A DNA stretch of 64,000 nt from the sequence record NC_049850.1; one strand, given 5' to 3'. Each line of letters begins with the position of its first letter. Position 1 is the stretch's first letter. Below are positions 13,470 to 63,464 of this stretch, piece after piece. The translations under genes and the position numbers were made by a program. The notes beneath the pieces are model-generated. The model was not told the origin of the DNA. It ran no database searches and was given only the letters and a program-made list of their open reading frames with translations.

Positions 13470-13479
13470 CCAATTTTAT
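13470..13479 (+). promoter_or_regulatory. class B motif CCAATTTTAT
   Basis: CCCAATTTTATA is identical at 13469 and 28959; it lies upstream of ORF 13502. Confidence 0.5.
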
Positions 13480-13501
13480 ATTGGATAAAAACGGAGGTCC
13501 T

Positions 13502-27990: not shown

Positions 27991-28233
27991 ATGTACTCCT
28001 TTCTTGTGAACTCTAGCCGACCGGACCCCAACGATTTCAGTTGGCACGTTTACTCGAAAGCTACACCCACGGCAGTCAGCGCGAACCTCACGCTCGAAAA
28101 AGGCGTCAAGTTTGGGGTTCGCGCGCACCCGGTGTCGCAACACTCTGTTCAGGTGGTAGTCGCTGGTGCGTCGCGCGTCTATAGCGTGAGTGCCCACCGA
28201 CTTCCCCGCCTCTCCAAAGGAGCACGAAAATGA
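27991..28233 (+). CDS. hypothetical protein
   Basis: 80-aa ORF in the operon. Confidence 0.5.
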   Translation: MYSFLVNSSRPDPNDFSWHVYSKATPTAVSANLTLEKGVKFGVRAHPVSQHSVQVVVAGASRVYSVSAHRLPRLSKGARK

Positions 28234-28955: not shown

Positions 28956-28959
28956 GTTC

Positions 28960-28969
28960 CCAATTTTAT
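28960..28969 (+). promoter_or_regulatory. class B motif CCAATTTTAT
   Basis: Start of the intergenic region upstream of the tail operon. Confidence 0.5.
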
Positions 28970-28977
28970 AGCGGTAA

Positions 28978-29157
28978 TCCCGTGAGCGTATGGGACGTTT
29001 TTCTTCAGGCGAGTGTTGGTTTTGGGCCTGTACGCTGTTGTAGGAGAGGTCGTGCTTCGGCAGGCTGGTTCGCGGGAACCAGTTTAGACCTCTCCTTTCT
29101 TTTTGCCCCGGTGCTGGCAATCACCGTGAGGATCGCATATCTGCCAGCACAAAGGGC
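28978..29157 (+). ncRNA. candidate structured RNA or leader
   Basis: Four helical elements, including a 10-bp-closed three-way junction with a cUUCGg hairpin followed by a U tract. Confidence 0.45.
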
Positions 29158-29178
29158 CTCAGTATAAGCGAGCGCCAA

Positions 29179-30327
29179 ATGTCATATCTCTCCGACGCAG
29201 TATCAAGAGCTACCCAGCAGATTAAGACTGGCGTGAACTCACAAATTAGCAGACAGGTTCAAGGTATCAAGGGCGCAGTGTCCAGTGCCGAGAACGCTGT
29301 AGTAAACGCAGCGGCAGGTGTCGTAAATAATACGGTACGCACTGCTGTTGGCACCGCCATTGGCGCAGCCGCAGACCTATTGTCCGGTAACCCGGGAGGT
29401 GCGCTGACGACTCTGGCCAATGCGCCAGAAAAGATTTTGGGCTCTGCACTAGGCGGCCTAGGCGGCTTTGCCGGGCCTTCGTCACTGGACCTAACGGGCC
29501 CGGGGACGCTATCGGAAATGTCGAGTTCGGGTGGTATCAACCCGGGCGACAACTTGTTCGGTGCCCTAAACCGCACGGACCCGATGATGAACTACAGTTG
29601 GTACTGCCAACTTCCGGTGATCAGTCCGGGCTCCACGCAATCGGAATCTCCCACATCTGGTTCGATTCTCGGGAACTTGGCAGGTAGCCTAGGCAACATC
29701 CTGAAGTCGAGTATCGCAGGTTCCGTCAGCACGAGCGGAAGCGCGCAGCTTCCATGGTACTTCGTGGAGGGCGCTACGTGCCCGTTCCGTCAGTACGACA
29801 CGGTGACGATCTTCCGTGAGGGCCGAGACCGCAAGTACCCGTCGAAGTATTCGGTGGACAACCTGCAACTTACGATGTACGCGGACTCCGCAAACCAAAC
29901 CTTCCAGTACCTGCAAGCGTGGAACAACGCGATCCTGACGCCCTTCGGCGCGACGGCCGCTGCAACCATGGGCGGGGGCTGGGGACGCCCGAGCGACTAC
30001 AAGAAGCCGATCTTCATCTACCTGCTGGACGTTACGAATCAGGTAGTAGCCCTAATCGAATACGTGGAATGCTGGCCCGTGTCCGTCGAGCAGTACACAT
30101 TGGAGTCCGGCTCTAGCCAGCGTGTTGTCAACCGCGTGAACTTCTCGGTCGGTGACGTGTTCATCAACCTGATGGAAGTGTCGAGCGATCTGATCGGTGA
30201 GGTGCTGTACAACGCAGGTGCAAGTGCAGTGAACGCAGGTGTGAGCGCCGTGGGCGGTTTGGCCCAGCAAGGCTTGAACACCGCAATCAATTCCATGAGC
30301 GGCGCGCTCGATGGAATTTTCTCATAA
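29179..30327 (+). CDS. tail tube-fold baseplate protein (T4 gp19/gp54-like)
   Basis: DPMMNYSWYC, LQLTMY, YLQAW, DYKK.I, CWPVSV and VNFSV; Gly/Ala-rich termini. Confidence 0.6.
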   Translation: MSYLSDAVSRATQQIKTGVNSQISRQVQGIKGAVSSAENAVVNAAAGVVNNTVRTAVGTAIGAAADLLSGNPGGALTTLANAPEKILGSALGGLGGFAGPSSLDLTGPGTLSEMSSSGGINPGDNLFGALNRTDPMMNYSWYCQLPVISPGSTQSESPTSGSILGNLAGSLGNILKSSIAGSVSTSGSAQLPWYFVEGATCPFRQYDTVTIFREGRDRKYPSKYSVDNLQLTMYADSANQTFQYLQAWNNAILTPFGATAAATMGGGWGRPSDYKKPIFIYLLDVTNQVVALIEYVECWPVSVEQYTLESGSSQRVVNRVNFSVGDVFINLMEVSSDLIGEVLYNAGASAVNAGVSAVGGLAQQGLNTAINSMSGALDGIFS

Positions 30328-44586: not shown

Positions 44587-44625
44587 AAAAAGCCCCGTAC
44601 ACCTAACAAGTGTACGGGGCTTTTT
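44587..44625. terminator. bidirectional intrinsic terminator
   Basis: 16-bp stem AAAAAGCCCCGTACAC / GTGTACGGGGCTTTTT. Confidence 0.85.
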
Positions 44626-44644
44626 GTTACATCTTCTTACATCC

Positions 44645-44654
44645 TCAATTTTAT
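44645..44654 (+). promoter_or_regulatory. class B motif TCAATTTTAT
   Basis: ATCCTCAATTTTA is shared with 23611; upstream of ORF 44737. Confidence 0.45.
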
Positions 44655-44736
44655 CGTGCAGAGCCAATTCGGACCTGTCTTCGTGCGAAAGTGACCAGTC
44701 GCACGTTGTTAGCAATACTGAAAGGATCAGAAGATC

Positions 44737-50643: not shown

Positions 50644-50729
50644 CTTCTGCGTGCCGCCTATTAATGTACCCATTGCATAGATACACTAAAATTGGCTGTT
50701 CGGTTATTGCCAATACAGGGCCCTATTCG

Positions 50730-54124: not shown

Positions 54125-54157
54125 CAATAAAATTGGGACGCCTCAGCGTCCCAATTT
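54125..54157 (-). terminator. intrinsic terminator overlapping class B motif (54127-54136)
   Basis: 12-bp perfect stem AAATTGGGACGC / GCGTCCCAATTT right after the stop of ORF 54446. Confidence 0.7.
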
Positions 54158-63386: not shown

Positions 63387-63425
63387 GATCGTGCTCCATG
63401 TCAGTCACTCCTAGATTAACCCGTT

Positions 63426-63464
63426 ATAAAATTGGCGAATCCCATAAAATTGGGCTAGTAAATA
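63426..63464. promoter_or_regulatory. divergent control region: two class B motifs (minus strand, 63426-35 and 63444-53) and one class A motif (plus strand, 63455-64)
   Basis: ATAAAATTGG twice and CTAGTAAATA, each pointing toward its flanking gene. Confidence 0.55.

Follow-up and report, generated by a model that had tools for sequence, protein, structure and literature searches.

What is the role of the 223-bp spacer that precedes the gene for the tail tube initiator in the Burkholderia jumbo phage BcepSaruman (hereafter Saruman)? The window, which is the whole 64,000-nucleotide stretch of DNA that was analyzed, is part of the 263,735-bp genome of this phage (MK552140.1), window base 28000 being record base 152000. 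A sequence-only reading of this DNA had pointed out the gap and had suggested that it encodes a small RNA of ~130 nt with a branched terminator or, alternatively, an attenuator or leader in front of the tail/baseplate operon. The gap is present, as are all the stems listed in that reading, each where it had been placed, and the structured region does begin behind a promoter-like motif and end before the first gene of the baseplate/tail block (Table 1). As the answer that we favor, with moderate confidence, we propose that the spacer is the cis-acting 5' leader RNA of the baseplate/tail-tube-initiator operon of phiRSL1-like jumbo phages and acts as a two-stage throttle.

Table 1. Coordinates of the genes and RNA features at the spacer (positions in the window)
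Feature	Position	Strand	Remark
DUF3175-like gene, 89 aa	28686-28955		directly upstream of the spacer
Spacer, 223 bp	28956-29178		between the DUF3175-like gene and the tail tube initiator gene
Promoter-like "class B" motif, CCAATTTTATAG	28960-28971	+	directly 3' of the stop codon of the upstream gene
Hairpin TCCCGT/ATGGGA with T run	28978-29005	+	terminator-like; Saruman and Sauron only
Hairpin CAGGC/GCCTG	29006-29030	+	G/U-rich loop; positional counterpart of the stem-loop of the relatives
Intrinsic-terminator-like element	29042-29104	+	10-bp closing stem 29042-51/29087-96; U run 29096-29104
H-type pseudoknot	29105-29147	+	covariation, alignment A3
Helix Pa	29106-29113 with 29122-29131	+	T29127 and A29129 bulged
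Helix Pb	29114-29119 with 29142-29147	+	5' strand inside the Pa loop
Pseudoknot crossing loop	29132-29141	+	crosses Pa
Alternative partner of the Pa 5' strand	29148-29157	+	CAC (29148-50) and GGGC (29154-57)
Small start-site hairpin	29155-29176	+	-8.1 kcal/mol; covers AAGCGAG, 7-13 nt before the start codon
Tail tube initiator/baseplate protein gene, 382 aa	29179-30327	+	ATG at 29179; regulated gene of the proposed leader

The spacer and its counterparts in related phages

The 382-aa protein encoded behind the spacer shows a weak Pfam match to the T4 gp19 family (gp19/gp54-like) and is named tail tube initiator in the annotation of the sister phage BcepSauron (hereafter Sauron). Baseplate and tail genes follow downstream of its gene, and farther upstream of the spacer there are a terminase gene and a gene for a 651-aa protein, the positional counterpart of which in Motura is annotated as portal. 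In the GenBank record of Saruman, the gene (gp252) begins in a shorter form at 29518, resulting in an apparent gap of 562 bp; a true start at 29179 is supported by the annotation of Sauron and by homologues that align from residue 1. The DUF3175-like gene is missing at the equivalent position in loci L005 and L006, with no counterpart seen in the gene tables of phiRSL1 and Motura, and it looks like an addition in the Saruman lineage. There is also an unannotated ORF (80 aa; window 27991-28233, +) between the portal-like gene and gp250, which has no Pfam match and has ORFs of 82-88 aa at the equivalent position in L004, L005, and L006.

The plus strand of the spacer was predicted to fold at -83.6 kcal/mol (z = -2.4), with 1 of 200 shuffled sequences folding as well, and the minus strand gave a z of -4.2. 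The fold of the single sequence therefore settles neither the strand nor the reality of the structure. The stronger evidence is from relatives, for which the downstream protein, and afterwards an alignment of this protein, served as the query. They come from phiRSL1, BCSR5, Motura, and numerous contigs of metagenomes and IMG/VR, with protein identity ranging from 58% down to about 29-30%, and no tail tube initiator gene was found in a scan of bacterial and archaeal genomes. A direct DNA similarity search with the spacer matched only Saruman and Sauron, the spacers of which are 100% identical, so that this pair carries no covariation information. The protein-based searches recovered 34 distinct upstream regions, and about 30 distinct relatives carry the same layout before the same gene. 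The spacer is 170-290 bp long in nearly all related loci, and its parts come in the same order, which is a promoter-like motif, a stem-loop, a strong hairpin with a U run, an H-type pseudoknot, and a small hairpin over the ribosome-binding site. The pseudoknot and the last hairpin had been absent from the description in the sequence-only reading. That reading had made its proposal depend on conservation and covariation in relatives, and both were found. The spacer is thus, as judged from the comparison of sequences, a conserved structured RNA leader on the plus strand. The general form of the earlier proposal holds insofar as this RNA carries a hairpin with a U run in its middle, but the branching of the terminator does not extend to the relatives in general.

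It is very improbable that the spacer holds nothing specific, i.e., the ordinary terminator of the head-gene operon and chance hairpins in GC-rich DNA. The z of the plus strand is modest, and the wider region shows no excess of terminator-like sites (8, with 9.4 expected), as would be consistent with such an explanation; however, three separate helices covary over about 26 lineages, the layout is kept down to about 30% protein identity, and the promoter-like motif is upstream, not downstream, of the terminator.

The leader belongs to no catalogued RNA family. A search of Rfam 15, which had been suggested as a check on the earlier reading, yielded no match at gathering thresholds in the whole window, and at permissive thresholds the spacer gave only a chance match to a microRNA model, which scored 14.6 bits where the threshold is 83 (E = 4.4). 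Nothing was matched on the leader in 11 relatives at E <= 1 either. ARAGORN found no tRNA or tmRNA genes in the window, and inspection of the alignment indicated no matching T stem for a GGTTCAA stretch that is present in the pseudoknot loops of relatives. No description of the leader was found in the literature searched. Recognition of GGA in the manner of CsrA/RsmA and a likeness to T-loops are tentative leads.

The promoter-like motif, stem-loop, and terminator-like element

Near-matches to the promoter-like motif occur 7 times in the window, compared with 1.4 expected. When the whole genome was scanned for CAATTTNAY, for which the public stretches of MK552140.1 were joined with the window in record order, 15 sites were found, being mostly intergenic and 35-90 nt before co-oriented genes, including a tail collar gene and two homing endonuclease genes. 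As the other copies are located only 35-90 nt before genes, the 218-nt leader is exceptional. Among 30 related loci, 27 have a motif of this kind at a distance of 108-212 nt before the pseudoknot, and the motif precedes the terminator in the same proportion of lineages (27/30). At window 44588-44656, in contrast, the ordinary order of terminator, motif, and gene is observed, which is the reverse of the order in the leader. CCAATTTTATAG is a putative promoter. Additional copies are present at window 13470-13481, 44645-44656 (behind a textbook terminator at 44588-44626), 50684-50695(-), 54125-54136(-), and 63424-63453(-), the last being a tandem pair, and one copy is 20 nt before a GIY-YIG endonuclease gene (13502).

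Of the two hairpins that had been noted behind the motif, the first (TCCCGT/ATGGGA, 28978-95) is present together with its T run but is not a general feature, having no counterpart in the leaders of relatives and being confined to the Saruman and Sauron pair. The second (CAGGC/GCCTG) is likewise present and is, by its position, a candidate homologue of the stem-loop of the relatives. In 22 lineages, this stem-loop carries GGAAGGGT at the 3' end of its loop, and the 13 nt after it are fully divergent among the lineages and always complementary to an upstream segment. The native duplex of the 5' stem was accordingly more stable than non-native combinations of strands from different lineages (-14.0 versus -8.6 kcal/mol; permutation p < 1e-4, 22 lineages), where it is to be noted that permutation tests of native against non-native pairing ignore the relatedness of the sequences.

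The next element carries the sequence features of an intrinsic terminator, which are a G+C-rich stem and a U run immediately 3' of it on the transcribed strand. The closing stem (AGGAGAGGTC/GACCTCTCCT) encloses a hairpin with a TTCG loop and a CTGGTTC/GAACCAG hairpin and is followed by TTTCTTTTT, and the segment 29042-29096 plus TTTCTTTTT was predicted to fold at -32.6 kcal/mol. A strong stem with a T run is also present at the equivalent place in related leaders. The three-way junction that had been described for this element exists in Saruman as drawn but is not conserved, because the branch is shared by only five lineages (Saruman, L004, L005, L006, and L114) and the form seen in most lineages is an unbranched hairpin interrupted by an internal loop. 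Similarly, the AGGAG and the GTG-started ORF of 11 codons said to be buried in the junction (29052-87) do exist, but they have no counterpart in 21 relatives and are not a general feature; an attenuator that operates by a leader peptide was rejected for this reason. The phage phiRSL1 has no RNA polymerase genes and is rifampicin-sensitive (PMC5468394). Therefore, the host polymerase, which obeys intrinsic terminators, would be expected to transcribe the leader.

The main rival to the cis-acting leader is that the 5' half (28960-29104) is a gene for a stand-alone, trans-acting small RNA of about 130-140 nt, for which the G-rich loop of the relatives would be the recognition element, the pseudoknot and the start-site hairpin then belonging separately to the 5' UTR of the gene that follows. 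We regard this as possible but doubtful. The conserved order of promoter and then terminator is as expected for such a gene, and GGAAGGGT remains unchanged in 14 of the 22 lineages (the other 8 having one- or two-base variants) while the stem flanking it changes completely. The halves were also found apart, with locus L108 having the 5' stem-loop, the terminator, and the start-site hairpin but no pseudoknot, loci L153 and L163 having the pseudoknot without the 5' stem-loop, and L143 having an insertion between the two, as described below; such separability of the modules suggests that the two halves of the leader may function independently. L151 and L115, moreover, carry another promoter-like motif past the terminator and ahead of the pseudoknot. 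On the other hand, the loop motif is missing in Saruman and L106, and the U run abuts the pseudoknot in most lineages, leaving no space for a second promoter, so that the downstream gene must depend on read-through there. Furthermore, no consistent target was found for the G-rich loop. In 9 of 17 lineages, its best partner was within the neighboring terminator, at the pyrimidine-rich 3' side and the U run (e.g., L132 2336-2410, L107 2315-2370, and L131 2328-2409), and the sites in the lineages outside this majority were scattered. The predicted pairing of the loop with the terminator could mean, for example, antitermination or protection of the 3' end.

The pseudoknot and the start-site hairpin

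The cis-acting leader that we favor continues beyond the U run with the pseudoknot, which is, by the alignment, its best conserved and most diagnostic part. The sequence-only reading had drawn a plain stem, GCCC..GTGCTGGCA/TGCCAGCAC..GGGC, over 29105-57. The pairing is present; however, an H-type pseudoknot that has an extended hairpin as its alternative is the better description. In an alignment of 26 sequences (A3), the cells of the pseudoknot were paired at 87.9%, compared with 71.1% in shuffled alignments and 29-44% when the partner strand was slid, and cells with double changes numbered 73 against 24 expected. The covariation score was 0.526, compared with 0.212 in shuffles, and was reached by none of 500. 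Pa was paired at 92.7% with double changes in 7 of 9 pairs, and Pb at 81.6% with double changes in 5 of 7; the 5' strand of Pb being located within the loop of Pa and compensatory changes being found in both helices, the arrangement is that of an H-type pseudoknot. The loops in A3 are 0-3 nt between the 5' strands of Pa and Pb, 0-2 nt between the 5' strand of Pb and the 3' strand of Pa, and 8-10 nt for the one crossing the 9-bp Pa, such lengths being compatible with coaxial stacking. The columns of C29106, C29107, A29129, G29130, and G29131 were invariant (26/26), and T and C columns in the crossing loop were conserved at >= 90%.

With respect to the strand, G.U cells numbered 39 and A.C cells 13, and pairing was 87.9% on the plus strand versus 81.6% on the minus strand. 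An RNA from the minus strand was rejected despite the better fold z of that strand, as it is countered by these counts, by the orientation of the genes, and by the U run. A covariance model built on A3 (R1) scored 49.8 bits at the pseudoknot of Saruman, which was the sole match in the 263,735-bp genome, and the idea of a repeat or regulon was rejected on the basis of this single copy. In 33 related loci, including 4 sequences outside the seed, R1 gave one match each, which was on the plus strand without exception and, in every locus for which the start of the tail tube initiator gene was located, shortly preceded that gene. No match was found in 665 kb of unrelated viral DNA. As a negative control, we used loci from an exact 14-mer search of IMG/VR with CGTGGGAAGGGTGC, the loop motif of the relatives, which gave 95 stretches; the pseudoknot was absent from 77 tested CGTGGGAAGGGTGC loci, three known relatives aside. 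In phiRSL1 (L104 2647), the annotated GTG start of ORF208 falls inside the 3' strand of the pseudoknot, and the start based on homology is an ATG about 44 nt farther on, matching position 2501 of L150.

The 5' strand of Pa has an alternative partner immediately behind the pseudoknot. In Saruman, CAC lengthens Pb into the 9-bp hairpin that the earlier reading had seen, and GGGC pairs with GCCC (29105-08). Across 23 lineages, the 5' strand of Pa paired better with its own downstream segment than with those of others (-7.85 versus -5.55 kcal/mol; permutation p < 1e-4). This preference is weak in Saruman (-5.3 versus -4.9), in which the pairing does not exceed the control, and it is likewise weak in L005, L111, and L106. 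The start-site hairpin overlaps the alternative partner, as its 5' strand includes part of GGGC, and in relatives the downstream segment overlaps or abuts that strand. Two conformers of the Saruman leader, one with the extended hairpin and the masking hairpin (-23.4 kcal/mol) and the other with the outer stem and the extended hairpin, leaving the start site open (-22.6 kcal/mol), are nearly isoenergetic, the difference being below 1 kcal/mol. As for the start-site hairpin itself, the basis is inspection of the minimum free energy folds of 24 leaders, which mostly show a hairpin immediately upstream of the start codon, the Shine-Dalgarno-like purines being part of its 3' strand. A permutation of native and non-native strands gave p = 0.38 and is uninformative, because the Shine-Dalgarno and anti-Shine-Dalgarno strands are alike in all lineages. 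Taken together, comparison among the relatives demonstrates the conserved order of the parts, the covarying 5' stem-loop and both covarying helices of the pseudoknot, the alternative partner, the strand, and the single-copy, gene-specific location.

The presence of two mutually exclusive, co-conserved structures beside the ribosome-binding site, along with nucleotides that are invariant or nearly so beyond what pairing needs (A29129, the C-C and G-G columns, and T and C in the loop), could also be explained if the pseudoknot were a sensor, i.e., a riboswitch aptamer or an operator for a phage protein, such as an unassembled baseplate protein in autorepression, the binding of which would stabilize the pseudoknot and keep the start site masked. 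We consider this unlikely. No riboswitch model of Rfam matches Saruman or the 11 relatives, permissive thresholds included, the downstream gene is structural and not metabolic, and a single-copy element provides no regulon that would hint at a ligand. In addition, invariant C-G pairs and an A-rich crossing loop in H-type pseudoknots could simply form minor-groove triples that stabilize the fold.

Homing endonuclease genes have settled at the spacer. In Sauron (L002 7180-7940), window 29182-29192 is replaced by 757 bp with a GIY-YIG/NUMOD3 homing endonuclease gene, which begins at or just after the original start codon of the tube initiator; therefore, the endonuclease gene inherits the leader. 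The tube initiator of Sauron restarts with an AGGAGG of its own and an ATGA overlap, and its first five codons are recoded (MSYLS in Saruman and MSFLS in Sauron), a pattern expected beside a homing site. In L143 (1688-2394), which is otherwise similar to L132, a 0.7-kb GIY-YIG endonuclease gene is located exactly between the U run of the terminator and the pseudoknot, representing a second, independent landing of an endonuclease in the spacer. In addition, a metagenomic relative of 230 kb has a match to the group I intron (Rfam RF00028, 81.4 bits, E = 4e-19) among the genes that precede its leader (L107 1766-2054). The two landings could suggest that the spacer is conserved as DNA, e.g., as a homing-endonuclease target, a recombination hotspot, or a site of replication or packaging. 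This is nevertheless hardly likely, because the G.U pairs favor an RNA of the plus strand, the conserved helices are outside both insertion points, and the spacer is kept in many relatives that have no endonuclease genes.

Proposed two-stage control and comparison with known systems

In the two-stage throttle that we propose, the points at which transcription starts and terminates, the assignment of the conformers to on and off states, and any trigger are what we infer from the conserved features. The host RNA polymerase would initiate at or just past the motif at 28960-71, and the 5' stem-loop domain would form in the nascent RNA. The strong hairpin and U run would then stop many transcripts as an RNA of about 130-140 nt, with a fraction reading on. 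The read-through RNA would fold into the compact pseudoknot, the Pa 5' strand of which may pair instead with the segment 29148-57, which is shared in part with the 5' strand of the hairpin over the ribosome-binding site. In the pseudoknot state, the downstream segment would be free and the ribosome-binding site masked, keeping translation low, and in the extended-hairpin state, the masking hairpin would be weakened, allowing translation. Folding kinetics, a protein, or a small ligand are candidate triggers of the switch. Both stages would limit, and possibly time, the synthesis of a protein that is presumably needed in few copies per virion.

It is also conceivable, although we hold this only tentatively, that the locus represents two undescribed RNA classes of jumbo phages, one being a sensor pseudoknot for a ligand or an assembly protein and the other a promoter-proximal small RNA with a conserved G-rich loop. 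If so, the former would make translation of the first baseplate gene responsive to conditions in the infected cell or to the state of tail assembly, and the latter would act in antitermination at its own terminator or on a target in trans.

Hardly any work has addressed how jumbo phages regulate the dosage of their structural genes, and the structured RNAs known from this group are few. The leader, which is compact, is supported by covariation, and has a fixed genomic address in a whole lineage of soil and plant-associated phages of Burkholderiales (phiRSL1, BCSR5, Motura, Saruman, Sauron, and about 25 metagenomic lineages), offers a case in which throttling of a presumably low-copy virion protein, at transcription and at translation together, can be tested directly. 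This study also corrects gene starts in two public records and indicates that homing endonuclease genes settle repeatedly inside the leader, thereby inheriting its control.

With respect to known systems, the 5' half is similar to the leaders of late operons of the lambda pR'-tR' "6S" type, which give a short RNA by default and make the downstream genes rely on read-through, in that a promoter-like motif is followed within about 140 nt by a strong hairpin and a U run, before structural genes. It differs from them in that neither a Q-like or N-like factor nor a site for one was identified here, read-through regulation being a proposal, and in that the present leader serves one operon in a 264-kb genome and not a whole late region. 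The antitermination RNAs HK022 put and EAR similarly have, between promoter and terminator, a conserved stem-loop of which the loop sequence is also kept, as the leader has behind its promoter-like motif, but their Rfam models show no similarity to it, and Saruman is without the conserved loop motif. Of the traits of Hfq-type small RNAs, the promoter-like motif and the terminator are present, and the loop motif is present in the relatives but not in Saruman.

In the 3' half, the exclusive long- and short-range helices that would set access to the ribosome-binding site resemble those of the leader of the MS2 maturation gene and of the metastable folds of the hok type, and low and possibly time-limited translation would be expected by this analogy; there is, however, no sequence relation, and kinetic control is only inferred here. 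The mRNA of T4 gene 32 carries an H-type pseudoknot in its leader, tens of nucleotides upstream of the ribosome-binding site. The present leader is comparable to this operator as an H-type pseudoknot in the leader of a phage mRNA, but it has no sequence relation to it, includes a start-site hairpin and an alternative helix that is conserved together with the pseudoknot, and precedes a structural gene, not the gene of a DNA-binding protein. Finally, although no Rfam model of the pseudoknot riboswitches matches, the context of a structural gene suggests no ligand, and the order of the conserved blocks presumably differs from that in these classes, the likeness to preQ1-I/II/III, SAM-II/V, guanidine-III, and fluoride riboswitches includes a compact H-type pseudoknot, invariant nucleotides, and two exclusive folds. 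Like them, the pseudoknot adjoins a helix that could mask the Shine-Dalgarno sequence. Invariant nucleotides and an alternative helix are present, the permutation for the link to the start-site hairpin being uninformative as given above, and the pseudoknot adds a candidate to the orphan riboswitch-like motifs.
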